This document shows positions 7,986 to 28,916 of a DNA stretch of 64,000 bases, one piece after another. Position numbers and translations under genes: made by a program. Numbering within the stretch: the stretch's first letter is position 1; each line of letters begins with the position of its first letter. Origin of the DNA: Selaginella moellendorffii (lineage: Eukaryota; Plantae; Lycopodiophyta); contig NW_003314299.1 of assembly GCF_000143415.4 (NCBI RefSeq), forward strand, positions 1,424,316-1,488,315, written 5' to 3'. The notes under the pieces were generated by a model. The model did not search any database. It was not told where the DNA came from and saw only the letters and a list, made by a program, of their open reading frames with translations.

Positions 7986-9774
7986 ATGGCGGACGACGGC
8001 GACGCCAAGGGGTTTGATCCATCAGCGCCGCCGCCGTTCACCATCGCCGAGGTCCGCTCCGCCATCCCTAGCCACTGCTGGAACAAGAGCCTGGGCAGAT
8101 CTTTGAGCTTCCTGGCCAGGGATCTGGCGGGCGTCGCGATCTTGGCCTGCATTGCCGGATATTTCGATCACTGGCTCGTCTGGCCCGCGTATTGGATCGC
8201 GCAAGGCACGCTCTTCTGGGCGCTCTTCGTCATCGGCCACGACTGGTAAGCAAAATCTTCCATTTCCATCGACTCGCATTGGATTTCATTGCATGGCAGT
8301 GGTGAGAATTTTGTCTCTTTGGTTTGCTCTTGGATTTCTGGTGCCCTGCATTGCGATTCTTTCACCTGAATGCCTCGAAGTTCCCTTTCTCTTGGATTTC
8401 GCGCTCGATATTTATTTTTTCTTATACTTTTTATGTACGTTTGCGTGCGTGCTTTTTTATTTTTTGTTTTTTTATTTCTTGGGTTTTTTGTGACTTAGAA
8501 CATGTCTCTAGTTTGTCTTCTACTTCCCTTGAGCAACTTGCGTGAAAGTTACTCTATGAATTCTTTTTCTATGCAGTGGACACGGAAGCTTTTCTGACAA
8601 CAAGGACGTGAACACAGTCGTAGGACATTTTGTCCACTCGTTTATTTTGGTCCCGTATCATGGGTGGTGAGTGATCAGATTCTCTTGTCCTGTTTTTGTC
8701 CTCCGCCATGACTGATTCCCCGGCCTCGCAGGAGAATCAGCCACAGAACTCATCATCAAAATCACGGTCACGCAGACAATGACGAGTCCTGGTCACCTGT
8801 AAGCCGTTCTGAGGTTGCAAATTTTCAAAAATTTCATGGTTTTTTCAGATGACTGAGAGCATGTATAAGTCGTCTCCTCCACTGAAGCTTGTTGCACGGT
8901 TCCAATTGCCGTGGCCATTGTTGGTATTCCCGTTCTATCTCGTAAGGATTTGTTTATTCTCCATTGTTCGAGCTTGACACCTTCTTGTGCTCGTAGGTGA
9001 AAAGAACTCCTGGCAAGGATGGTTCTCATTTCCATCCAGAGAGCCCCTTGTTCAAGCCCAGTGAGAGGGGTGATGTTTTGACGTCAACCGCGTGTTGGAC
9101 GGTCATGTTGGCCATCCTGATCGCCTTGACGATAAGAATCGGGCCACTCTGGATGTTGAAACTCTACTTTGTTCCTTACGTGGTAAGTCCTCTACGCTCT
9201 TGAGTATGCAATCCAGTGTAGAACTCTAGCTTTATTAACTTTTCGTTTCTTTATCATTTTCAGATCCAGATAATGTGGATTGCTGGCGTTACTTACATGC
9301 ACCACCATGGCCACTACCAGAAAGTACCATGGTATCGTGGGAAGGTACAAGTATTTTCCTGTTCTGAGGATTCATTTCTCTCAAACGAGCTCTTTTACAT
9401 CTCAGGAATGGAATTACATCCGAGGCGGCCTATCAACTATAGACCGAGACTATGGATTGTTCAATAACATTCACCACGACATTGGAACGCATGTCGTGCA
9501 TCATTTGTTCCCGCAAATTCCACACTACCATTTGATCGAAGCCGTAAGTTTCTCTGAGTAGTATCAAGGGTCATCGATTAACGTTCTTTTCAAATTTCCT
9601 GTGTAGACTAAAGCCATAAAGCCGATTCTCGGGAAATACTACAGGGAGCCTGAGACGTCCGGGCCAGTGCCGATCCATTTGTTCAAGGTTCTAAGCAAGA
9701 GCCTCAAGGAAGACCAGTTCGTCGCCGACGACGGCGATGTTGTCTTCTACCAGAGCGATCCAGGCTTGAAGTAA
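7986..9774 (+). CDS. FAD3: Omega-3 fatty acid desaturase, microsomal type (FAD3-like), no transit peptide
   Basis: Starts [18 protein letters not shown]. Same three His boxes and equivalent intron positions as the upstream copy; ends FYQSDPGLK. Confidence 0.88.
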
Positions 9775-9939
9775 GTCTGTTTTTTTGTCTCTGGAAGACC
9801 AAATTTTTGGAGAGTTTTAATAATCCAGCCGGCGATGCTAAGGTAAAGATAAAAGCACCTCTTTTACTGACCAGTTTTTAGTGTTCTTCATCTTAGAACT
9901 CGGTTTTGAGAGAAAAAAAATTCCATTTCATCGAAGTTT

Positions 9940-10935
9940 TCACGAGCTTGCAACTCGAATTTTCACGAATGTGGCTATGTCCTCGCAAAATTTCCTCGCA
10001 TGAGGAAATTTTGGAGCCAAGTAAAAGCCATGGCAGGCCCCCGGGACGAATATGCTCTGGGCCTCCTTTCCAGCGGCTATCAGCTTGTCCACGTACTGTG
10101 CGTGGCGGTCCTGGCCAGGGCACGAACCCCCAATCACCACCAAAGTTGGCGGAATGGCCATGGCCGCCAAATCTAGCGGCGCTTCTCCGCCAAATGGATT
10201 ACACCCCGGATGATCCCTGCTCGCGCCGGGTGGGAGATACGCGCGCCATCGCCACTCCGAGAATCGCTGATTCGCGAAAGGGACATCCGCGAATTCCTTC
10301 TCGGATGGCGTGAGGGATTCGCCTCCAAAGGATGGCTGGATCAAGACCTGGCCGCGAATGACGATGGGGGAGAGATCCTCGCGCGCCAGGGCGAGCTTGG
10401 AGCTGAGATTGTGGACGAGATTGCCGCCGGCGCTATCCCCGACGAGGAATGTGTTGGAGAGATCAAGGAGCGCGTTCTTGGAAGAATGCTGCTGGAAATA
10501 TTTGAGGGCTTCGAAGCCATCGTCGATCGCTGCCGGGTACCTGTGCTCTGGAATGCGGCGGTAGTTCACGGAGATCACGATCGCTGCGCAGGCCGTGGCG
10601 AGATTGCGGCACAGGGCGTCGAAATGGGGCGATGCTGGCGTGCAAAGCGCGAAGAATCCCCCGTGGAAGAAGAAGATTACGGGGAGCGTGGACGAGGAGG
10701 AGCTCGGCGTGAAGATCCGGACCCAGAGATCGGTGTCTTGATCATCGATTGTGAGATCCCGCGCGCTCACTCCCTCCGCGTCGATTGCTGGGGTTTTGCG
10801 GTCGAAGAAATCGGCCGCGCGCCTGCTGAAGCTGCCGTCGCCGCGGAGGATGAATGGAAGCGCCATGAATTTCCAGATGAATGCCGCGATCCTCGCAGCG
10901 AATGGCGTGGCCAATGGCGGATTGGCCATGGACAA
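9940..10935 (-). CDS. HSL-family carboxylesterase / GID1-like protein (intronless)
   Basis: FHGGFF, SVNYRRIPEHRYPAA, GDSAGGN and CHGFY motifs; N-terminal RGDGSFSR..DFFDRK resembles the GID1/CXE lid. Confidence 0.9.
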   Translation of the reverse strand: MSMANPPLATPFAARIAAFIWKFMALPFILRGDGSFSRRAADFFDRKTPAIDAEGVSARDLTIDDQDTDLWVRIFTPSSSSSTLPVIFFFHGGFFALCTPASPHFDALCRNLATACAAIVISVNYRRIPEHRYPAAIDDGFEALKYFQQHSSKNALLDLSNTFLVGDSAGGNLVHNLSSKLALAREDLSPIVIRGQVLIQPSFGGESLTPSEKEFADVPFANQRFSEWRWRAYLPPGASRDHPGCNPFGGEAPLDLAAMAIPPTLVVIGGSCPGQDRHAQYVDKLIAAGKEAQSIFVPGACHGFYLAPKFPHARKFCEDIATFVKIRVASS

Positions 10936-11008
10936 CAGAGAAAAAATTCTTTAATGGATCTTTCTCTATAAAGTGTCGAATATGTTTTTAGGGTTTATGC
11001 GCATTTAA

Positions 11009-12099
11009 ATGTCTTGGCCCGCCGTGAGCTCCAAGCGCGGGTTGCGACGCCGCGAGCTCAAGGGAATCCATCTCTTCACGGTACGTTTGAGACGGATTTC
11101 TTTGATGATTCCCCTGCTTGGCTATGGCAGATCGATGATCTCTTGAGCACGGCCGAGGTGGATGCGTTCGTCGCGGCGGCGGAGAAGCTAGGGTTCCAGC
11201 ACCAGGGAAGCCTTGGCCCCAGCAAGGGAGAGGCATTCAGGGACAACGATCGAATTTCGCTCCACAGCCAGGCCTTGGCCGATCAGCTCTGGAATGCGGA
11301 CCTAGCGGCGCTGTTTGATGGCATTGAATCGAATGGAAGGATCGCCACAGGGCTAAACCCCAACATCAGATTCTACAGGTAGAGCTCACGATCCAGTTTC
11401 CTTAAAGTTCTCATGCCTCCAAATCCATCCATTTTTCACTCCTTACGACCTTCCTGTGGTACTCTATTACTTCCTTGCGAGCTTCTCATATAGATTGAAG
11501 CATCAAAATAATCCCCTTTCCTTTTCCTTCTTGTGGTATTCTATTACTCCTTCGCATGATCGAAAGCATTCTCTTTCCTTTCACTTTCTGTAGTGCCTCC
11601 TTACGAGCTTCTCGTATAGATTGAAGCATCGAAATAGTTCTCTTTCCTTTCCCTTGCTGTGGTACTCTATTGCTCCTTGATTTCTATCTCCAATGATTGA
11701 AAGTGTTGTGGATTTTCAGGTATAACCAAGGCCAGCGGTTTGGTCAGCACGTAGACGAGAGCGTAGAAATTGATGCCGATCATGCCACCGAGTACACGCT
11801 TTTGATCTACTTAAACTCGGGGATGGCTATCAAATCCAAAAAGGGAGCGCGGGACTCTCAACTTGTTGGCGGAGAAACGGTGTTTTACACTGGCCGAAAC
11901 AAAGCAATAGGGGTGAGTTTGCGTAGCCATCCTTTCGGTTTTTCTCAAGAAATGGCATTTGCAGGTTGTTCCTGTTTCAGGGATGGCTTTGCTGCACCTG
12001 CATGGCGATGAATGCATGCTACACGAAGCTAAGACTGTCCGTAGAGGAGTGAAGTATGTGCTACGATCGGATGTAGTCTTCTCCAAGAGAAGAGAATGA
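11009..12099 (+). CDS. 2-oxoglutarate/Fe(II)-dependent dioxygenase (prolyl-4-hydroxylase-like); exons 11009-11080, 11131-11378, 11720-11912, 11965-12099 (215 aa)
   Basis: GEAFRDNDRI, GLNPNIRFYRY, HVDES (HxD), TLLIYL, GGETVF, MLHEA (distal His), KYVLRSDV. Exons splice to 648 nt in frame. Confidence 0.9.
11440..11680. repeat. Imperfect internal tandem duplications in intron 2 of the 2OG gene
   Basis: GAGCTTCTC(A/G)TATAGATTGAAGCATC occurs twice and TGTGGTA(C/T)TCTATT three times. Confidence 0.6.
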
Positions 12100-12251
12100 T
12101 ACAGGTATCACGTTATTTTCCAGCTTTGTGCCTTCAAAATAGCTAAAATAGCTGGGAACATTTACCAGTTCCATGATTGTAAAAATTTCGTTTAGCTAGC
12201 TCATTGCATTTTGAAGAAGAAATATTCCTTATAAAAAAGATTTGTATTTGA

Positions 12252-14324
12252 TCACCTTGCCAACTGGTATCTTTGGGCTTGTTGAAGGCTTTGCCTCCTC
12301 AGTGACTTTCCCAACATGGAAGAATCTCCTCTAGAGTATAGGTTCACAAGCAGCACATAGACTGGTTTCAAATTCTCTATGTTAGAACCACCAAGAACAC
12401 GCTCTGCCACCCAAGCTCCCAGTTTGTGATTGTTGTGACTCCTGCAAGCGCCAAGCAAGCAAATCCAATCCACAGCCTCAGCAACGTAGGGCATTCCCTG
12501 GATGAGATCTCGAGCGTCTTCCAGATGCCCAGCTCGGCCCAGCGTGTCAAGCATGCAGCAGTAGTGCTGCTTCGAGTGGGGGATTCCGAAGTCGAGGGTG
12601 ATGGATATGAAGCTGGATCTAGCAGCGTAGAGCTTCCCTCCTTGACTGCAGGCAATGAGATGGAGCACGAAGCAGATATCGTTTGGGGATTCCGTGATCT
12701 TGGTGGTGTCAAAGAGATCACAGAGCTGGTCACTGCAGCTCTCGAGGTTCTGGCAGTAGGCCGCGAGCATTGCGTTCCTGGAGACGATTCCTGGCTCGGG
12801 AATCATGTCGAAAACTCGCCTGGCCCTCACGAGCAGCCCATTGCGGTAGTACGCAACAATGAGCGACGTCCACGACATGGAATCCCTCTCCGGCATCGCA
12901 AAGAATAACAACAACGCCTCCCTCAAGAAACCATTCTGTGAGTAGCCAGCGAGGAGGGTGTTCCACGAGAAAAGGTTCCACTCGGGCATATTGTCGAAGA
13001 TCCGCTTGGATTCTAACAGATGCCCTGAGAGGGCAAATGCAGCCAGCAAAGCAGTCCACGATACGACGTCATGTTGGAGCATTTGGTCAAACATGGACTT
13101 GGACTTCTCTACTTCACCGCTCTCTCCGTACGCCACTAGCATTGACGTACAAGATTCCAGGTGCCGGAGCGGCATCTGGGAGAACAATCGCTCGGCATCC
13201 TGCAAATGCCCATACTGGGCATTTACCGCAAGCATGGACGTCCACGTGGCCAGTTGCCACTGTGGCATGGCCCTAAAAACACTCAATGCCTCGCTGACAT
13301 TGCCGGCTTGTGTGTAAGCCCGCAACAGCGAGGTCCACGTCACAAGGTTCTGGACTGGCATATTCTCAAACGTACGCCTAGCTTCTAGAACATTCCCTTC
13401 TTGGGCATATGCCGTAAGGAGAGATGTCCACGCGACAAGATCCCACTGGGGCATTCTGTCAAACAAATGTTTAGCTAATTCTACCTGATCACTTCCAGCG
13501 TAAGCGTTTAAGAGAGTATTGTACGAGATAATATCATGCTCGGGTATCCCATCGAAGTGTATCTTTGTACGCTCCAGATACCCAGAGTGGGCATATGCCA
13601 CCATCATCGCGTTCCAGGCGGGGAGCTGGAACTCGGGCATCGAGTGGAATATTTTCTCGGCATTTATCAGATCCTTGCTCTGAGAATATCCCGCCAGCAT
13701 CGCATTCAGCGTCACGAGATTCCACGCAGGCATATCATGAAATATTCGCTCCGATTCCAGGATATGCCCAGTTTGGGCATATGCAGCGAGCATGGCAGTC
13801 GAGGACACGAGGTTTCTCTCGGGCATCCAGTCGAATATCCGCCTCGATTCCTCGAGATCTCCACTCTGCGCGTATGCGACGAGCATCGTGGTGCACGAGA
13901 CAGAGTTGAGAGCCGGAATTCGATCGAAAATCTCTCGCGCGCGATCGATCTGCGCCCCATTCCGAATGTGGGCGCTCAGAATCGCGGTCCACGCGACGAT
14001 GTCGGGCTCCGGGATCCGATCGAACAGCCGCTTCGCATCGTCCAAGCGATCGTTCCGCGAGTACGCGCAGAGCATCAAAACCCAGGAAAAGGGGTTCTTG
14101 TGCGGGATTTCATCGAACGCTTGCTTCGCTTGCTCCAATCCGCCGCACCGCGCGTACATCTCCACGATCTTGTTGTAGACAAACACGTCGAGCGATCCAA
14201 TGCCTCGGCGCACGCGCTCGTGGATCTCTTGCGCCCGCGAGAGCGTGTTACAGCCCTCCAGGAGACGCACACAGTGGCTTCGCTCCATCCAAAGATTTGA
14301 ATCTGGAGCGTTCGATGGCGACAC
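12252..14324 (-). CDS. PPR protein with many ~31-aa short (S/SS) motifs and an E-type C-terminus; no DYW domain
   Basis: Intronless 690-aa ORF with repeated (D/N)(L/V)V(S/A)W(T/N)A(M/L)L.AYAQ.G.L..A..(I/L)F..MP units, then HYCCMLDTLGRAG and W..LLGAC. Confidence 0.9.
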   Translation of the reverse strand: MSPSNAPDSNLWMERSHCVRLLEGCNTLSRAQEIHERVRRGIGSLDVFVYNKIVEMYARCGGLEQAKQAFDEIPHKNPFSWVLMLCAYSRNDRLDDAKRLFDRIPEPDIVAWTAILSAHIRNGAQIDRAREIFDRIPALNSVSCTTMLVAYAQSGDLEESRRIFDWMPERNLVSSTAMLAAYAQTGHILESERIFHDMPAWNLVTLNAMLAGYSQSKDLINAEKIFHSMPEFQLPAWNAMMVAYAHSGYLERTKIHFDGIPEHDIISYNTLLNAYAGSDQVELAKHLFDRMPQWDLVAWTSLLTAYAQEGNVLEARRTFENMPVQNLVTWTSLLRAYTQAGNVSEALSVFRAMPQWQLATWTSMLAVNAQYGHLQDAERLFSQMPLRHLESCTSMLVAYGESGEVEKSKSMFDQMLQHDVVSWTALLAAFALSGHLLESKRIFDNMPEWNLFSWNTLLAGYSQNGFLREALLLFFAMPERDSMSWTSLIVAYYRNGLLVRARRVFDMIPEPGIVSRNAMLAAYCQNLESCSDQLCDLFDTTKITESPNDICFVLHLIACSQGGKLYAARSSFISITLDFGIPHSKQHYCCMLDTLGRAGHLEDARDLIQGMPYVAEAVDWICLLGACRSHNNHKLGAWVAERVLGGSNIENLKPVYVLLVNLYSRGDSSMLGKSLRRQSLQQAQRYQLAR

Positions 14325-14342
14325 CGCCGTCTATGGGCCTTC

Positions 14343-14810
14343 TTGGCCGATCAGCTCTGGAATCGAGGTATCGGGACGGCTTCCTCTGATGATTCGCTGG
14401 TTTTGGTATGGCAGATCGATGATTTGTTGAGCATGGCCCAGGCGCTAAGGTTCCAGCACCAGAGTGGTCCAAGGGAGAATTTTGCTGCACAGCTAGGCCT
14501 TGGCCGATCAGCATTGAGTCGAATGGCAGGATCGCCACTGGTCTATATCCCAATATACAGGTAAAGCTCACAATCCAATTTTCTCCTGTGCATGGCTGTG
14601 CAAGTTCTCTTTCTTTTTGCTCCCTCCATTGTCCTTACGAACTTCTCGTATAGATTTTAGCTTTTCTTTCCCTTATTACTGCTAGCTTCCTTCTCATAGA
14701 GATTGAAGCATTCCCTCCTTTCCTCCTTAGAAAACTTAATCATCGTTCTCCTACTGTTGTTATTTTTCAGGTACAACGTAACTTGGGGATGGCCAACAAA
14801 TCCAAAAGGG
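14343..14810 (+). pseudogene. Decayed partial duplicate of the 2OG dioxygenase gene
   Basis: TATGGCAGATCGATGAT, GGTTCCAGCACCAG, GGCCTTGGCCGATCAGC, TACAGGTA.AGCTCAC, intron-2 sequence and TTTTCAGGTA.AAC all match 11100-11840, with deletions. Confidence 0.85.
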
Positions 14811-15115
14811 TTGAGGATTTTCATCACAAATGGTGGACTTTGGAAGCAAAAATACCTTAGTTTAGACTGGAGCTGAGAATTTGCAAAGAAGAAATCCTAG
14901 AGGAATATAGTTGGAGATAAGAGGGACAAAGAGTGAATGGACTTTCTACGTCGGATAAATCTTCTAAAGCCGTGAATATTCTTTGTTTCCCGGAAATTCT
15001 AGGCGCGGATTGCGTTCATGCCGCCGGATAGCGCTCGCTCTTTGTCGATTCGGATTGTGATGTTTTCCGATACCGCATTCTTGATTGCGATCGAAATTTC
15101 ATTACAGCACTTGTA

Positions 15116-16247
15116 ATGTTTGATCGAAATTTCGTTTTGTCTAGAGGGTTTCGAAGGAGAGAAGCCCGTGAACAAGAAGACTTTTATGGCACTCTCATTC
15201 TACTTGCATATCTTGTCCAACTCTTCGGTGCTACGCTTATTCCACGTGAATCATATGTATGGAGTAACACCATGACTCTGCTAGTGATGGTTCTTGACAC
15301 CGAAATGCAGAACTGTACCAGTCATGTTTTTTTCCCATTCTTTTTATCTTCTAACTATATTGTTTAATCAGGATCTGATCAAGAGCTCTCAGATTGTAGA
15401 TGCGATAAACAACGAAGACGTAGAATTGCTGCATGACTGTGTTGTCTACTTTTTGGGCCCAAAAGTGGAAGCCATGTCTAAACACTGCAAAGGTAGTGCT
15501 GCTTTCTGATCTAACTTAACCCTTATTAGGTCCGTGCTCTCTCATGAGTATAACAGCTGCTCAAATTTTGGTGGAGGCTATGGGCAAGTTGATTTCTAAC
15601 TAAACACTTCCGAACAAGGAAACTGGTCCTGTTCTCAGCATTCTTGCTTCTTTGCAAAATGCTGCACAGGTGTTGGTGGCAGAGCTGAAGCCGTTTCTTC
15701 CTCTTTCACTCAAGCATGTGGAAGAGTTAGATACATGGGGATCTTTTTTCCTGGAGATCTGAAGTACACAAATCCTATTGACATTATGTCAAATATGGGG
15801 ATGCAGCTGGTTGACGAGCAGCACGCCGCTCGCTTTCAAAGGAAGTTTGGCGGGGTTCTTGAATGTATTCTCCATTCTGGAACCTTGCACTGTGAGATGC
15901 AAATAGTGAGCCATCTGGTGAGCTCTGGCACTACTGGTACCAACTTCGAGAATTTTGGCTTGAGTAAATTGCCCTGTGGCTTGTGTTATGAGGTATTTGC
16001 TATGTTACAAAGTATTTGTTTCTCACTTATGATTTTATACTCGCATGCAGATACTGAAGATCTTCGTGCGTAACACGGAAAGTTTATTGGCAATTGGAGG
16101 TCTCTTGCTGGCTGTCCCTTCGACGTAGCAGCTGTGACCAAGTGTCTGCAGGATCATGTGGCTGTTCTGATCCAATCGGCTCACAACCACACCCTGGAAG
16201 CCCAAGGGCTTCGACTGTTACGTACAGACTTGCCCAAGTTTGAGTAA
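15116..16247 (+). pseudogene. OTT_1508-like nucleic-acid deaminase, multi-exon, apparently frameshifted (5' boundary uncertain)
   Basis: LHCEMQI (HCE at 15888-15896), then FGLSKLPCGLC, then after an intron and a 1-nt frame break HGKFIGNW; final stop at 16245-16247. Confidence 0.72.
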
Positions 16248-16283
16248 AAAGATTTCTAACATTTTATTTCTAGTAATCAGATG

Positions 16284-18092
16284 TTAATCTGGTGAGCACG
16301 TCGACTTGGCAAGAGCTGGGTCGAGTGGGGTGCTGATTACAAGAACCGTAGAATCCTTGTCTGCAGGATCTAATACTGAGAGAGCCTCTGCTGTCTGTAC
16401 AACATCCCCACGAGAAGCTTCCTCGATGGCGTGAGCGGCTAGTTTCTTCAAGGACAAGGTCGCCACTATAAACAGGTCTCGTGGTTGTTTTGTTGCCTCC
16501 ACCACGTTCACGTTGCCAGCATCTTCTGGGGTGAGCCACTGAAACGAAATAAGAAACTTTTTCGTATGAGCAGGAAGCAAAGACAGCTCCATACTCACCT
16601 TCAAACCTTGCGAACCGACAAGAGCAACTACGAAAGCGCCAGGCCCGCCGACTGCTACGACATTCCCCTTGACAGCAATCACTGTCGAGTGCATCTCCGG
16701 AAGCCACTCATCCTCCTTTGACACAACGAGAAAATACATCGAATACGAAAAACAAAAGAAGAAAATACCCGAATTGTGTGGATGCTTTCGACCTCGTCGT
16801 CTTCCTTTTCCCAGTCCCGCTCGTCTTTTTCGACTTGCATGAGCTCCTGGATCCTGTTTTGCGTCCCTTGCTTTACTCTAGATATACCCATCATGTATGG
16901 ATCACACAAACTTAAGCCTTTTACCTGCGGAAGAGACTTTCAATGGAACGCTTCAGGTTGCCAGTGCAAAAGGCGTCTGACAAATACATGTTGAACAGCC
17001 CCAACCTGTACATACACAGGTCTCTTGCCACTGCGAAACAAAGCCCAGATGAGAGTTCAGTGTAAGAAAGAAATGACTTACGTGGATGTCGGGCTCCACG
17101 ATAGCCATCCGATACAATAACGTGGATTTTCTCATCTCCCACTTGCAATTCTTGAAACAAGTTCTGCAGCGATCACCTTTGAGAACAGCAAACTCAATCA
17201 ACAATGCTCACCAGATTGAAAGACAACTTCTTGTCCATCCTAGCACAAGACAAGCCGCCCTGAACATGAATCTGTGGCCCAAACCCGCGATCAAGCGGGT
17301 AAAACCGCACGCCCCTTGGGAAATCCACCTCCCGCTGCTCTCGCCACCCCATACCTAGCTAGGTTTGTAAAAATTGAACATGTTTAGCGCAATTAGTTAG
17401 GTGGTGGCATCCTCTGTGCTGGAAGAATACAGTGAAATCCTCCCTCTGGCTACATGAGATCAATGAGAAACTTCTTCCATGACGCTTGCCGTCGGAATCT
17501 GTATGGGATTCGCCTTGGCATCCTCTGTGCTGGAAGAATACAGTGAAATCCTCCCTCTGGCTACATGAGATCAATGAGAAACTTCTTCCATATGGGATTC
17601 GCCTTGGCATCTTCCGTATAGCGGCTGCCCATGTACTTGTAGAAGTGTTTCGGAAGAACAGCGCGTCCCAGGAGCAGGGGAACTGGTGTAGATACGGCAT
17701 ATTTTGGTTAGTCCGTAGCGTTCCATTTTGGCACTTCCAATGGAGCCCACGTCATGGGAGTATCTGGTTTGTATTCGTCGTCGGGGAGCTCCGCCCATTC
17801 ATAAAAAATCTGCTTTTCTTGGTCAATAATTTTCCCGTGGACATCCCGACGTGTGGCAATGAGGATCACATAAGCTGCACAAACTTAGTGGGTGCAAACA
17901 TCTCGTCCCAGTATCCAAGCGAGCTCGGGAATCCAGCTCAAGCCCTGTTTCGTATCTCCTTCCTCTGCGTATTAAGATCTCACCATGGATCGAGAGCGCA
18001 TCCGTGACATTGGTCGTTGGTGGTAAGTTCTCCACACACATAGACACACTTGACTTATGCGACTTACTTGAAGCACCAGGATATGAATTCAT
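16284..18092 (-). other. Unidentified multi-exon, lineage-specific gene or pseudogene convergent with the deaminase
   Basis: Chain of minus-strand ORF pieces bounded by GT-AG sites, with Cys-rich segments (CRTCFKNC, CVCTGWGCSTCIC). No recognisable domain. Confidence 0.4.
17405..17611. repeat. Interleaved perfect direct repeats (76 bp x2 and 21 bp x2)
   Basis: 17405-17480 equals 17516-17591; TATGGGATTCGCCTTGGCATC occurs at 17502 and 17591. Confidence 0.9.
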
Positions 18093-18699
18093 TGAAGTAT
18101 GTCTGTTTTTCTTCTGTTTTCTTCTTACGGCTTAGCTAATTTTTCCAGATCGACGAAGGAAAAGAGAGCGCTTTGAGTGCTCTCTGGGTCCATATCAATG
18201 GGCAATTAGTATGGATCTGGAGCAGACATCCCAAAGATTGACAGTGGTGAGAGGCTCAAACATCTCGCCCAGTACTCTGAACAACAAATTTATCAATGCT
18301 TGCAAGTTGTGTGGCCAAGTCGAAAGAGTGGAGTTGAGATGGGATATGTGTTCTACCACCCAGCTGAGATGAGGAACATGATGATAGATAAATTTCAAAG
18401 TTCTTCCAGAAAATCTTTTCTTTGGCATTTTCATTCCATTCCAGGCTATGAGGCTATGAGGTCACAATCAATCAATCTCAATGGCATGTAAAACCAGTGC
18501 CCCGATGCTTTGATATCAACATGCTTAACTGTGCAGAAGGGGATATCCAAGTCACATTTTTGGTTTGCTAAAATGCCCCAAATGTTATGGTGTGGAGGAT
18601 GAACTGGTGAGCTTAGAGAGTGAGTGTGATAGCGAGGAAGGTATTGTGTAGATGGTATTACTGTAGGGATGCTCACTTCATTTCTAGTGAAGTTTGTCA

Positions 18700-21298
18700 A
18701 AGACAACTATTTCAACTACAACTATATGCAGTATACTAAGATTGTAGCTGAGTAGGTGATTAGTCAATTAAAAATGCACTAAATATATGTAGTCAAATTG
18801 CATTATAGATTATGCTATTATGCACAGCATTATGGTAGTTAAGTGGTGACATATTTTTTAAGGAGTGGGATAGTGGTAATCATGTCTAGAATATGACACT
18901 CAAGAAAGTAATGTTGTACTTTTGGATTTAGATTTAAGAAGATTATGATTATATTTTAAGTTTGCACTAATAAAGAAATTATATTCTCTTTCTAATCATT
19001 GGGTGGATGAGTTCAACGAAATTGAAATGGACTTAGACAAATGTATGAGAAGGTTGCAAAGGAGTGTTTATTTGTGGTTTATCAATTTATAACCAGTTAA
19101 AGCTCATGTGTTCCATTAAGTAGAAAAACACTAAATTTACAGTGTATTTAACACTTTTGGATGGAAATCTAGTGCAAGGTATCTCAAAACAATGAATTTT
19201 ACTATAAAGCATCATCAATTAATTAATTTGAGAGATGTTTGGCATGCTTACAGCATGAGGTACTTTATTGCAGTGGGTTGAAAAATATAATACTAATGTA
19301 CACTATCACAAACAAACATGGATATTGGCATATATATATTTCAATAAGACTATTCCAACCCAATAAATGCAAAACTAGATTATAAGCATCAATTTTTATT
19401 TTTACCTCAAACTTCAGACACTTACTAGTATAGTACAGTTGTGCCCCTTACTCACAAACACATTATCACGTTAAACATTAATAATGTGTACCAAAACCAT
19501 ACTTTTATACTTCTCTATAAAGTACTTATAAAAAAAATTAATAATCACTTAAATAATTTTTTATTTTAAAAGTAATGTGGAAAGTTTTGTGATGTGGCAA
19601 GGCATATAAAACCCATCCATACCACATACACTTTAACATTACCAAAAGTGATGTGAATGTGTTATAAAATAACATTTTTGTGTATACAAACAAAAAAACA
19701 TAGCATAAATTTAGACAACACTTTTTAATAGTTATAAGTGATGAATCCATGCTTTTGTCCATATATAAAGAATGAAGTATCTTTGAGATTAAATTTATAA
19801 AAAGAACTCATAATAAATATTTGACTCTTGTAGCATATCATTTTATTTATATCTCCAGAGTTAAAAATAAAATCTATAAACTATATTGTTACTACAAATC
19901 ATATCTAATTACTAAATAAATATAATTAATACTTCACAACTCTAAAATTAATTTTGATGTATCTAAACTCTCATTTAACAAAATCTTATAGTTTTGCAAT
20001 AATGATGCTCATCCAAAAAAATATTAATAACAATATTACACATTAATATATGGTTACAAAGCCTTAAAGTACTAAATGATTGTTTATATATTTATAATTA
20101 AAATTTTATAGTAAAAACTAATCTAATAAAATTTATTCATATAGCTTATAAAATAAATTTAAAATAAACAACTCCTAATATATAATGCATGTAAAAAATA
20201 TTTAATTATTTCCATTATGTAAATAATTGTTTTTTAAAAATATATTAAAATAAAAATATTTAAATTTACTTTTTAAAAATGATGGATTAATATTTACCTC
20301 TAATGGTAGTTAATGACTGAGTTTAAATAGGGAAAATAATAGAATTTAAAAATTCAAGTGCAAAAACACGTCTTTAACTAATCTTTTGTATTGATCTAAA
20401 TTTAATTGTAACCTAAAAACACATTTATAAATTTATATATATGTCTTCTCATAACCGTATCCAGAATAATATTAATAAACAGAGTAAGAAAGTAATTGCA
20501 GATAGTAGCTTTGTTCAATGCCCTAAAATTAACATAAACACGTAAGTTTCATGAATTAAAGCTACATATTAAAAGGTAATTGAAGCCATTCGCACTTGCT
20601 CTTTATTCTTGAAATGTGTTAAATTTAAGTGATGAATACATTCGCACTATGTTTTAAAATAAAGTAAATTACTTTACATTAAAATTTAGGATATTTTTTT
20701 AAAACATTTTGATTCGCACATAGTGCTAACTTTAACACAATGTTTTCACTTTTTAAAACATTCAGACCAATTTTAAAAGATGGGGGGGGGTTCTTTTAAA
20801 CTTAAAATATTTTTAAAAGGAATCTCCAAGATTCCCTAAAGATTCCAGCACCCTAATTAGGGCATTTCAGTTTTTTGCCGCGAGCTCAAGCATTTTATGG
20901 TGGGGGAGCCGATAGCAGTCATCGCTCTAGGGTTAGATCTTGTTGGGGATTCGGTAGAGGAAGGAGGAGCAACTGATTTTGGGGAAAGAGGAGCTGTAGG
21001 GTTTAACACGAGTTCGGGGCAGTGGCATACAGCAAGGAGGTGCTGCTCGTGGAGTGAGGAGCAACCGTGGTGGAGGAGCATCTGGGGCTAAAGGAAAAGC
21101 ACCAAGCCCAAATGTTGCTCGAGGAGGTAGGCTGCCTCAGGGCCAAGGCCGTGGAAATGCCAATCTCTCGAATCTTGGCCTATTTTGAAGACATTTTGAA
21201 ATAAGTCAAGTTTTATAAATATAAAATTTTTAAATTTCAATTTAAAACTTAAATAAGCAAACAAAATGATAAAATTATAACAAAAGTTTTTCAATATA
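18700..21298. other. AT-rich, CpG-poor non-coding island (probably old TE-derived), with a small GC-rich patch at about 20860-21180
   Basis: Visibly AT-dominated sequence that contrasts with the genic flanks; no credible ORFs. Confidence 0.55.
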
Positions 21299-24140
21299 AC
21301 TTTATGAGGTCCAAGTTTATAGTTATGATGCCATATACTAATATTAGCATTGTGGGATTTTAATTACCCTTAGATTGATTTTAATCTGGACCATTCACTT
21401 CTATATATAAACTAGGTTTTTGGGCTAATTGATATATATTTTATATTATCTTTCCATATTCCATGCACTAATATTGATGAAAATGAGGGGTAATTTTGAT
21501 TGTCCCTAATGAGTGCTAGAATTTGGGATTTTGGTTTAAATTTAACTTTTGCATTGTCTTGTCTAGATCTCCTTTTTCTTATTGCTTTCTCAATTTTTTT
21601 TCTTTTGCTCTTTTTTTTAATTCATCTTCATGGTAGAGCAACAACCTACTTATCTTTTGACTCTAGAGTAATAGTTGGTACAATTGTTCGATGTTATGTG
21701 GTTGCAATTGAACACCTAAACTCAATTGATAGTAACATTCACGACACATAATACAATTCCTTCTACTCTTATTACTAATCTTCATATTTGGTTAAAATTC
21801 TTCCGTGGGAATCTTAGGGATGATGTGTACCATTGATTCAATCACTTCATGGTAATTGCCACATATCATTCATAGGATGATGCTCAACATTTGTGTGAGT
21901 TTCCCATGTCTTTCTAAGGGATGACACTATAATGGTATAATGGTTTAAGTATACCTACTCGTGAGGATTGAAGTATTATTTCGGATGTGTTCAAGTTCAC
22001 ATTTGGATATGTTAACGATTGTGATGATGCCTTTTAATAATTGCATCATCTTTGTTAAGGGCAATCTAGGGTGGTGATGCAATTTGGCATTTGTTTTTAA
22101 AGCCTTTTGTTTTGTGTAAAGCCAAATATGTCACAACGGATCAAGCTAGGAATATTGTGGCTAGCACTTTGTCAATATCTGGTAAAAGTTGTGCATGCAC
22201 TTGTTTCTGCCACCCTTGACAATGCCCTTCGCTGGGTACAATATTATGAAATGTCGCCTCTTCCACTTTTTGTTACACATCCTTTAACTCCACTTCATGT
22301 GGGAGATGGTTTTGTTTCAATGGAAGTTGATGCCACTAGTTATATTGCTCGGTGGGCTTTGAAGCTTCAGATATATGATTTTGATGGTGTTCATTTCCCA
22401 AGGATTCTATGGCTAATATTGATGCCCTTTCTGCAGCTCTTCTTCCGTTCTTACTCTCTTCTCATTTTTTGACAACCTATTGTTGTAGTATTTATGGATT
22501 TTTTAGATGAGGAATTTGTGCCATCGATGGTTGTTATACTTAATATTTAATGTCCACAAGGTGCAAAGTAAGATTTACCTTCTTTTAACGAGATTCGTGA
22601 GGCTCAAAAGATTAAACTATGAATTTGAAAATTTCGAGATAGATTTAAAAATCTTGCATCACTTGCTGATGACTTGCCCTTTTAAAATTTACATTTTCAA
22701 TATCACCTTAAGGATAGTCTTCTTTATTTTTTGGGGATGGATCTTGATGATTATTTACAATTGATGGTGCTTTCTATTTTTATTCTACACTTTTTCTATG
22801 CCTACCATAATTCTTCTATTCTTGGTTGGGACATCATCATGTGATTAAGAAGTTGTGTAGGTCTTTTTATTAGCTGGAGATGCGACGTAATGTTATCTAG
22901 TATGTGCATAGTTGCATTTGGTGCTAAGTTTGTAATACTCCCCCTTGGGCTGTGGAAGGACGATTAAAATTAATTGTAGTTTTTTGTCCATTTGAGTTAG
23001 TGACATTTAATTTGATAGGACCTTTTCCACAATTAAAATTTAGCAATGAGTATGTTATTAGTGCTTCTGACTACTTGACTTGCTGGGTGAAAGGTGATGC
23101 TCTTGCTAGCACATTTACAATTGCTGTTAGATATTTCCTCCTCAATCAAATAGTGTTCTAGCATTCTTGTCTAGAGTGGAGTTTTTTTGAAAAATGGTCC
23201 CGCATTTATGGTTGAGGCATTTTATATTTTGACATTTTGATTGGGGATATGCCACACTTTCACGAATGCTTATCATCCACAATCAAACAATTTGGTAGAA
23301 CAGCTTGTTTGAACCTTTAAAGGGATGATTGCAAAGTATGTGAACTTTTAATATTCAAATTGGAATGATTATTTGCCATCTCTTTAGTATACGTATATCA
23401 CAGGGGTGCAAAATTTTGTTAATGCTTCACTATATAAATTCTTATATGGTTATAACATAATATTGCCAATAGAGTTGGGTTTACCATTGCGATTGCCATG
23501 GTCTGCCAATACTAAGCCATGGGATCAATATTTGACAAACATTCTTCCACTTGTTTGAGTAGAGTTTGCCGAATACTTAGGTTGTATACAAATTCAACAA
23601 TAATAGCATTACAACTCCATTATTATTCATTTGCGGAGTACAAAATGAATGATTTGGTGTTAGTATGTTTTCCCCATTTTATCGTATTTGGTTTATTTAA
23701 AGAGTTCCTTGCTCAGTAGAAAAGTCCATATCAAATGTTATAGTAAATTGGACTAATGGTTTATGAGGTTTGGCATGACATCTAGCAAGCTGATCCTCCA
23801 AAAATTGTGCATGTATAGTGGCTAAAATGTTTTGTACTAAAGGATCAAGAACAATTAACACCATTTACAAATCCATTGATGCTTCCTCTTAATGTTCTTC
23901 TAAATCCCAGCCCATCCATAAAAGAACCTTGACAGTATTCCATCATTTTAAGAGGAGGGGATGATATAAGGTCTAAGTGTATAACTATAATGCTATATAT
24001 TAATATTAGTATAGTGGGATTTTGGTTGCCATTAAATTGGTTTCAATTCGGAGTATTTGCTCTTATATATAAGTTAGAGTTTTTGGGGTAATTGATATGC
24101 ACATTTCTTGTATTCTCTTTCCATATTCCATGGACTCACA
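21299..24140 (+). mobile_element. Degenerate, internally deleted Ty3/gypsy LTR retrotransposon
   Basis: Diverged ~175-bp LTRs at about 21299-21471 and 23962-24140 (TG...CA); polypurine tract AAGAGGAGGGGA at 23950-23961. RNase H remnant ARWALKLQIYDF. Integrase remnants PFELVTFNLIGPFP...DYLTCWV, AYHPQSN.LVE and WNDYLP, broken by stops. Confidence 0.85.
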
Positions 24141-27731: not shown

Positions 27732-28916
27732 TCACGTCGAGGAATCCATGGGCTCCTGCTCGTCGCGCACAAACCCCCGGATCTTGTCCATCACCCGGTA
27801 GTACTGCTCGGTGTTTGGAAAGATGAAGAAACCCACCGGCGTGTCCTCGAGCACAAGGACCTCCACGCTCTTCCCGGATCTCTCCATCCCCCTGGCATAC
27901 CGCAGCTGCCAGTCCTGCGTCAAATCCAGCCCCGCCACCACCACCAGCGACTTTGGCACTGGAATCTCCCCGAGCACCCTCTCCGCGTCCGAGCCGGGCC
28001 CGAAAACGTTGCAAGCCGGGTGATCCCTGTCCGCCCCCTCGGGCAAGAAGAGCTTCCAATAGTAATCCCTGTCCTTGACCGTCACAAAGTACTGCCCGTC
28101 CAGCCTCCTCTCGGACGCGGTCCTCTCCACGCCGCCAAACATGGGCATCAAGAGAACGTGCCCAACGACGCGCACCGGCCAGAGCTCGTGCCGCGCGGTA
28201 GCCGCCGCAACGCCCACGTGGTGGACCATGTTACCGCCGCTGCTGTCCCCGGCTAAAAAGCACCGCGAGAGGTCGGCCCCCGGCGGTAGCCACGTGGCAG
28301 CAACGTGCCGGGCGGCTTGCAGCCGGAGCCACCGGAGCGCCGCCAGGCCGTCGCGGTACGCCGCCGGGCAGCGGTGCTCCGGCGCCCGGCGGTAGTTGAC
28401 GGAGATGACCACCGCGCGGCACGTACGGCAGAGCTGGCGGCACACCATGTCGTACAGCGCGGTGTTGGCGGAGGAGTGCGCGTAGCTGCCGCCGTGGAAG
28501 TAGAAGATTATGGGCACTTTGTCGTCGCGATTTGCTTGCTCTTCTTGGGCGTAGGCGATGGCGGGGAGGAAGATCCGGGACCAAAGGCCGGAGGAGCGAT
28601 CAATGGTCACGTCCATGGACGCGACGCCGTCGTGTGGGGCGAGGCTAGCGCTGGCCTTGCGATCGTGGAATTCGGCGAGGTTGCGGTTGAAGGATCCGTC
28701 GGCGCCGCGCGTGAGCATGTACTCCACCTTGAGCTTGGAGATGAGGATCCAGGTGCTGAGCGGCACCACATCCTGGAAGAAGGGATCGCGATAAAGGAAT
28801 CACGCAAGAAATCTCTCAAGAAACGAAAGAAATCTCTCAAGGAACGAAGAAATCTCTCAAGAAACTCGAAATCTCACCTTCGAGGGCTTGAGAATCGCCT
28901 TGCTACAGGAATTCAT
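27732..28916 (-). CDS. GID1: Gibberellin receptor GID1 (exons 28916-28878, 28772-27732; 359 aa)
   Basis: Short first exon MNSCSKAILKPSK, then DVVPLSTWILIS, DGSFNRNLAEF.DRK, HGGSYAHSSAN..YD, GDSSGGN, YFVTVKDRDYYW and LDLTQDWQ. The catalytic His position is Val (TPVGF), as in GID1 receptors. Confidence 0.93.
28806..28876. repeat. ~21-bp minisatellite in the GID1 intron
   Basis: GAAATCTCTCAAG(A/G)AAC... three times, plus a partial copy. Confidence 0.8.

Follow-up and report, generated by a model that had tools for sequence, protein, structure and literature searches.

Gene content of the window

We analyzed a 64-kb stretch of the genome of Selaginella moellendorffii (hereafter the window), which carries a locus related to nucleic-acid deaminases. 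The window is ordinary gene-dense plant DNA: the neighbours of the locus are a PPR gene, a carboxylesterase, a fatty-acid desaturase, a 2OG oxygenase and a sirtuin, and their order is kept on a second copy of the region. A first-pass annotation had described the surroundings as a "plant accessory island", a label that does not hold for ordinary plant genes that are collinear on the second copy. We found no zinc-finger family among the neighbours. The genes on either side of the locus are the following:

12252-14288, minus strand: PPR gene, the upstream neighbour, divergently transcribed
16284-17352, minus strand: unnamed downstream gene, no Pfam family

An exact direct repeat of 76 bases (17405-17480 and 17516-17591, 111 bases apart) lies in or beside the unnamed gene, and 6 kb of DNA at 30-34% G+C (18000-24000) separates gene-dense stretches of ~46-54% G+C. 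Two carboxylesterase (Abhydrolase_3) genes, both on the minus strand, stand 17 kb apart (9940-10929 and 27732-28769); the first is named "probable carboxylesterase 18" in the annotation of the second copy.

[quoted passage not shown]

The plus strand contains an open piece of 112 codons (15735-16070) that includes both LHCEMQI and FGLSKLPCGLC. Its translation matched the Pfam family OTT_1508_deam (PF14441) with an E-value of 4.5e-9 and 36.6 bits, over profile positions 1-47 of 64. Because the curated gathering cut-off of this family is 27 bits, the match is far beyond chance. The motifs were all found where the first-pass annotation had placed them:

15888-15986, plus strand: zinc and catalytic motifs, namely H (15888-15890), E (15894-15896), GLSK (15957-15968) and CGLC (15975-15986)

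In this family, HxE (in helix 2) and CxxC supply the zinc ligands and the catalytic Glu. LHCEMQ and PCGLC lie in the same open frame, and they do not vary when aligned with the two best intact relatives that we found (P0002 and P0003, described below). The OTT_1508-like clade was defined by Iyer, Zhang, Rogozin and Aravind (2011; PMC3239186), who listed the member SELMODRAFT_427619 from S. moellendorffii. Its signatures are a GxxK before the CxxC (their Table 1) and a loop with a polar residue, usually H, followed by aromatic-x-x-P; some parts of the clade have degraded C-terminal elements (PMC3239186). The locus shares with this clade the HxE and the GxxK-CxxC (GxxK being present as GLSK), and a putative counterpart of the downstream loop with H and aromatic-x-x-P follows. 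The profile match above the curated cut-off and the HxE, GxxK and CxxC motifs assign the locus, by its sequence, to the OTT_1508-like clade, as the first-pass annotation had claimed, and mark it as a sporadic, divergent eukaryotic member.

The C-terminal loop is less straightforward. In the window, HGKFIGNW (16074-16097) is read in a different frame from the deaminase core, so that the HGK...W of the loop is present after the CxxC but out of the core frame, and the WxxP there reads WRSL. By itself, the match of this loop to the relatives covers too few residues for a significant score. Frame 3 from 15288 to 16244 contains three stops in 319 codons, relative to a mean of 17.4 in shuffled sequences, and none of the 2000 shuffles reached so low a number.

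The remaining pieces of the locus, each searched separately and N-terminal pieces included, gave no match to Pfam, and the N-terminal pieces scored no higher against P0002 and P0003 than shuffled sequences did. This agrees with the earlier description of the N-terminal region as uncharacterised. AlphaFold2 models were of low confidence (pLDDT of 46 for P0002 and 34 for the window piece), and a sequence search of the PDB for a solved relative yielded only chance-level matches.

A second copy of the locus

A mate of the neighbouring carboxylesterase in its 90%-identity cluster led us to a second copy of the region on another scaffold (L007; GL377593.1). The two copies are collinear over the ~17 kb that this sequence covers, and L007 carries the unnamed gene, the PPR gene, the 2OG oxygenase, the carboxylesterase, the desaturase and the sirtuin in the order of the window. 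It is probably the other haplotype of the sequenced plant; the assembly is said in the S. moellendorffii genome paper to contain both haplotypes. L007 has no gene call at the position of the deaminase. Unspliced contigs of both copies were also present in an independent sequencing run (X1).

The second copy is informative about the reading frame. Starting at the acceptor at 15556/15557, one of its frames is free of stops over 117 codons: it passes through the stretch read in frame 1 in the window, crosses a run of T and enters the frame of the deaminase core. The annotated gene model would make ~85 of these codons intron, and we put the chance of such an open stretch at ~1%. After a 58-nt intron (15993-16050), the second copy continues in frame into GTHGKFIGNWRSP. 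This stretch corresponds to the G-[ST]-H-G...W-x-x-P loop that is also present in P0002 and P0003; GTHGK...WRSP is in frame in the second copy. Pieces of the second copy matched PF14441 weakly.

Reconstruction of the ancestral gene

The sequence of both copies suggests an ancestral gene of four exons separated by three GT-AG introns, with the following predicted structure:

15018-15245, plus strand: candidate exon 1, frame 3 open from the ATG at 15018 with the best codon-usage score; start uncertain
15246-15371, plus strand: intron 1, 126 nt, GT-AG, phase 0, from the sequence and the annotated model P0001
15372-15492, plus strand: exon 2, frame 3 open and supported by codon score; helical N-terminal part without known relatives
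15493-15556, plus strand: intron 2, 64 nt, GT-AG, from the sequence
15557-15992, plus strand: exon 3, rest of the N-terminal region and the deaminase core (HxE, GxxK, CxxC)
15993-16050, plus strand: intron 3, 58 nt, GT-AG, phase 0, from the annotated model
16051-16247, plus strand: exon 4, carrying HGKFIGNW, with the stop at 16245-16247

Exon 3 is read in frame 1 until the T-run and in frame 3 beyond it. This reading is based on the PF14441 match to 15735-16070, the alignment with P0002 and the second copy. Since the 117-codon frame of the second copy stays open, the exon 3 that had been proposed in the first-pass annotation appears to be real, and the structure given there is backed by the second copy from 15372 on. 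The first exon given there, in frame 2 from the ATG at 15116, is probably wrong. A better fit to exon 1 seems to be frame 3 from the ATG at 15018, although this assignment is uncertain; frame 3 is also favoured by the share of synonymous differences between the copies, and the annotated model likewise reads exon 1 in frame 3, from 15145.

The exon lengths plus three deficits sum to 957 (3 x 319), which would correspond to an ancestral protein of ~319 residues. Its first ~215 residues would have formed an N-terminal region that has no known relatives. The C-terminal part would have been a zinc deaminase domain of OTT_1508-like type, in which the H that binds zinc and the catalytic E were accompanied by GxxK, CxxC and a loop containing G-T-H-G-K and WxxP. 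By analogy with the family, the ancestral enzyme presumably deaminated an RNA or DNA base.

Lesions in the two copies

Comparison of the two copies, in which the polarity of indels was judged solely by reading frames and family motifs, identified the following differences in the window:

15101-15133, plus strand: 33 additional bases within exon 1, flanked by a direct repeat of 12 bases and missing from the second copy
15601-15603, plus strand: nonsense codon TAA in exon 3, in frame; a sense codon in the second copy
15744-15749, plus strand: frame change in the T-run, the window being one base shorter than the second copy
~16074-16078, plus strand: frame change in exon 4, the window being ten bases shorter than the second copy, which shifts HGKFIGNW into frame 3

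The first-pass annotation had described the locus as decaying, with a frame shift near the T-run at ~15743 and a 1-nt loss at ~16071, and comparison with the second copy supports a broken frame at both places. The second break and its effect on the frame stand, with a size of ten bases instead of one. The TAA at 15601-15603 was absent from the earlier list of breaks. The 33 extra bases of exon 1 hold an in-frame TAA (15114-15116) that may represent a fourth break besides the three well-supported ones. In addition, the proline of WxxP is replaced in the window, where WRSL (16095-16106) stands in place of the WRSP of the second copy. Contigs of run X1 were identical to the window over 15355-15837, including the stop at 15601 and the T-run. 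An extra C after 15642, suggested by X1 contigs, was rejected as an artefact of a short contig carrying a 66-nt duplication of the second copy.

The second copy differs from the window by its own lesions, about ten in number:

Exon 2: 14-base gain and 9-base loss
66-base in-frame duplication
Deaminase core: 17-base loss, 11-base loss and one-base gain
Splice site: loss of the acceptor at 16050
Further lesions: 29-base duplication, more small indels and a stop just past the start

Judging from these changes, the second copy is dead as well, by a different and larger set of lesions.

Taken together, the sequences indicate that the locus is very probably a pseudogene: the nuclear gene with four exons that once encoded an OTT_1508-like zinc deaminase would survive here as a dead allele. 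The frame of the window copy would have been destroyed by the TAA at 15601-15603, the one-base deficit at 15744-15749 and the ten-base deficit at ~16074-16078, and the second copy would have died independently through lesions of its own. Since both copies are broken, the locus would make no working enzyme today.

The public gene model

P0001 (270 aa; EFJ20172.1, D8S649) is annotated as "hypothetical protein SELMODRAFT_418573" of S. moellendorffii. Its locus (L001) lies on scaffold GL377603.1, the scaffold of the window, and is 100% identical to window positions 8433-22128. P0001 thus represents this same locus in public annotation. SELMODRAFT_418573 already bears the PF14441 label in public tables, and we found no mention of it by name in the literature. 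The model takes the following path:

14433 onward, plus strand: start in an upstream ORF, followed by a frame-3 exon from 15145 (annotation)
14832/15145 and 15492/15670, plus strand: exon junctions (annotation)
15493-15669, plus strand: skipped "intron" of 177 nt (annotation)

After CGLCYE the model inserts the 58-nt intron; its last 25 residues form a tail read in a different frame from HGKFIGNW. If the model were real, the locus would encode a truncated deaminase of 270 residues without the H/WxxP loop. The introns of the model are all GT-AG and it contains no internal stop, and a shortened C-terminus would be in line with the partly degraded C-terminal elements of the clade (Iyer et al. 2011; PMC3239186). 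However, the 177-nt "intron" contains the frame that is open for ~85 codons in the second copy and joins the deaminase frame at the T-run; on this open frame we rejected the combination of a real intron at 15493-15669 with an intact T-run. The conserved motif moreover lies in a frame other than that of the tail, one that stays open for 57 codons, and the ESM Atlas model of the protein has a pLDDT of 0.40. The exons upstream are without relatives, and in the second copy one of them contains a stop. We consider it very unlikely that the annotated model is real. The 270-residue protein is a construct of gene prediction that steers past the lesions: SELMODRAFT_418573 is mis-annotated as intact, its path skirting three lesions or more, and we read the collinear second copy as dead too.

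The upstream ORF that the public model fuses to the deaminase has two exons (14343-14876, plus strand) and no Pfam match. Its first exon is nearly alike between the copies, yet contains a stop in the second copy. Alternatively, this region may belong to the divergent PPR gene as its promoter or 5' part.

The break after the CxxC motif

The position of the C-terminal break can be read in another way. A TAA at 16071-16073 stands directly before HGKFIGNW and in its frame. The locus would still be a pseudogene if this codon were the break, reached in frame through a 39-nt intron (16012-16050) or through no intron at all. Both copies carry a TAA at this position, and the death of the gene would therefore precede the divergence of the copies. 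A 39-nt intron would put CxxC and H at the same distance from each other as in P0002, "EVFAML" resembles the "DVFEQL" of P0002, and the Pfam match continues through this stretch to profile position 47. However, introns of S. moellendorffii are usually far larger than 39 nt. The canonical 58-nt intron places the second copy in frame with G-T-H-G-K, whereas the alternative places this motif out of frame, and every other lesion is private to one copy. We initially preferred the in-frame TAA, which became less likely once the second copy was aligned, and we now regard it as possible although rather unlikely. The ten-base deficit at ~16074-16078 remains the preferred C-terminal break.

Relatives and comparison with known systems

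An exhaustive search of 1.84 billion representative sequences returned two proteins: P0001 itself and P0002 (304 aa; E-value of 1.9e-4), which matches PF14441 over positions 1-63 of 64. P0002 and the window core share an ungapped alignment that begins at HxE and ends shortly after CxxC, with 46% identity. A relative of P0002, P0003 (420 aa), comes from activated sludge. Across these best intact relatives, identity to the locus is 41-46% over 41-46 residues. Both resemble the locus in the GxSKLxCxLCY block and have GSHG...WxxP behind it; beyond the deaminase core, their similarity to the locus is undetectable.

P0002 (L002:1078-1992) and P0003 (L006:50-1327) are encoded on AT-rich (27-34% GC), intron-less environmental contigs, and the contig of P0002 also encodes an intein-bearing RPB2 and a NADAR gene. 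These contigs may come from a giant virus or from a compact protist. A word search found nothing with the 112-residue piece and P0001 alone with P0001. No close relative was found in bacterial and archaeal genomes, and viral contigs yielded nothing; among metagenome contigs, the contig of P0003 was the sole match. The nearest clusters of the ESM Atlas all belong to PF14441 and are mostly fungal, which we treat only as a lead.

We know of no plant OTT_1508-like member for which an activity has been established. Among eukaryotic members, only OLD-1 and OLD-2 of Neurospora crassa have been characterised (Honda et al. 2025, as described in PMC12754623). They belong to the OLD-ZAO antiviral module and act as A-to-I editors on mRNA from a neighbouring zinc-finger gene, one that contains a premature stop. 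The locus resembles OLD-1 and OLD-2 in being eukaryotic and nuclear-encoded; the Pfam domain and the HxE...CxxC centre are common to them all. It differs in its surroundings: the OLD-ZAO module has an adjacent zinc-finger target gene, whereas the neighbours here are the PPR gene and the unnamed gene.

Bacterial polymorphic toxins have an N-terminal secretion or RHS-type delivery region and an adjacent immunity gene; the locus has neither, and instead presents spliceosomal introns and plant neighbours. The DYW domain, found in plant PPR editing factors, is likewise a zinc deaminase with HxE...CxxC, and the locus lies in a PPR-rich genome just downstream of a PPR gene. However, the HSE...CxDCH arrangement, the PG box and the terminal DYW are all missing, the gene has no PPR tract, and no piece of the locus matched a PPR or DYW family in Pfam. 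The earlier statement that the locus is neither a DYW domain nor a TadA is supported.

Our results amount to an annotation correction within a known family and not to a new enzyme, as OTT_1508-like deaminases in Selaginella were already published in 2011 (PMC3239186). SELMODRAFT_418573 is a separate gene from the SELMODRAFT_427619 listed there, with three predicted spliceosomal introns, and appears dead on both copies. The fast birth-and-death family and the mutagenic or defensive role proposed in the first-pass annotation are hypotheses, our analysis covering this locus and its equally dead second copy. Because both copies are dead, the locus cannot be expected to supply a base-editor domain, and a working plant member is to be sought at other loci or in other lycophytes.

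Divergence between the two copies

We compared the divergence of the locus with that of its surroundings. Between the copies, the deaminase locus has accumulated 6.0% substitutions and 15 indels, 10 of which are not multiples of three. Divergence is lower in the coding sequences of the carboxylesterase (1.2% substitutions and no indel) and the PPR gene (2.1% and one indel), in the downstream gene (1.7% and five indels) and in intergenic DNA (3.8% and nine indels). Within the locus, the substitution rate of the inferred exons is not different from that of the inferred introns. The decay of the locus is neutral.

These values also bear on whether the gene could be functional, the breaks being assembly errors or being mended in RNA by editing or read-through. 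Frame 3 is unusually open, and A-to-I editing mends premature stop codons in the fungal relatives (PMC12754623). However, two of the three breaks shift the frame and are thus beyond repair by base editing, the independent X1 contigs reproduce the window sequence at the stop and the T-run, and the locus is at least as divergent as intergenic DNA. A functional gene is therefore extremely unlikely, and we retain the pseudogene as the explanation of the locus.

The divergence of the locus (15018-16247) exceeds that of nearby intergenic DNA (6.0% vs 3.8%; P = 0.014). Transitions are also in excess, with a transition to transversion split of 50:19 in the locus vs 123:93 in the flanks (P = 0.024). 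The CpG context of the transitions is not different between the locus and the flanks, and the excess is not explained by CpG. Both the extra divergence and the transition excess are weak effects that may be noise. A more speculative reading takes the OTT_1508 deaminases of lycophytes for defence genes that carry a cost and mutate themselves, have been exchanged with large DNA viruses and are repeatedly lost through selection as well as neglect. We give this reading very little credence; the points behind it are the separate knock-outs of both copies, the fast divergence, the transitions and the giant-virus-like contigs of the relatives.
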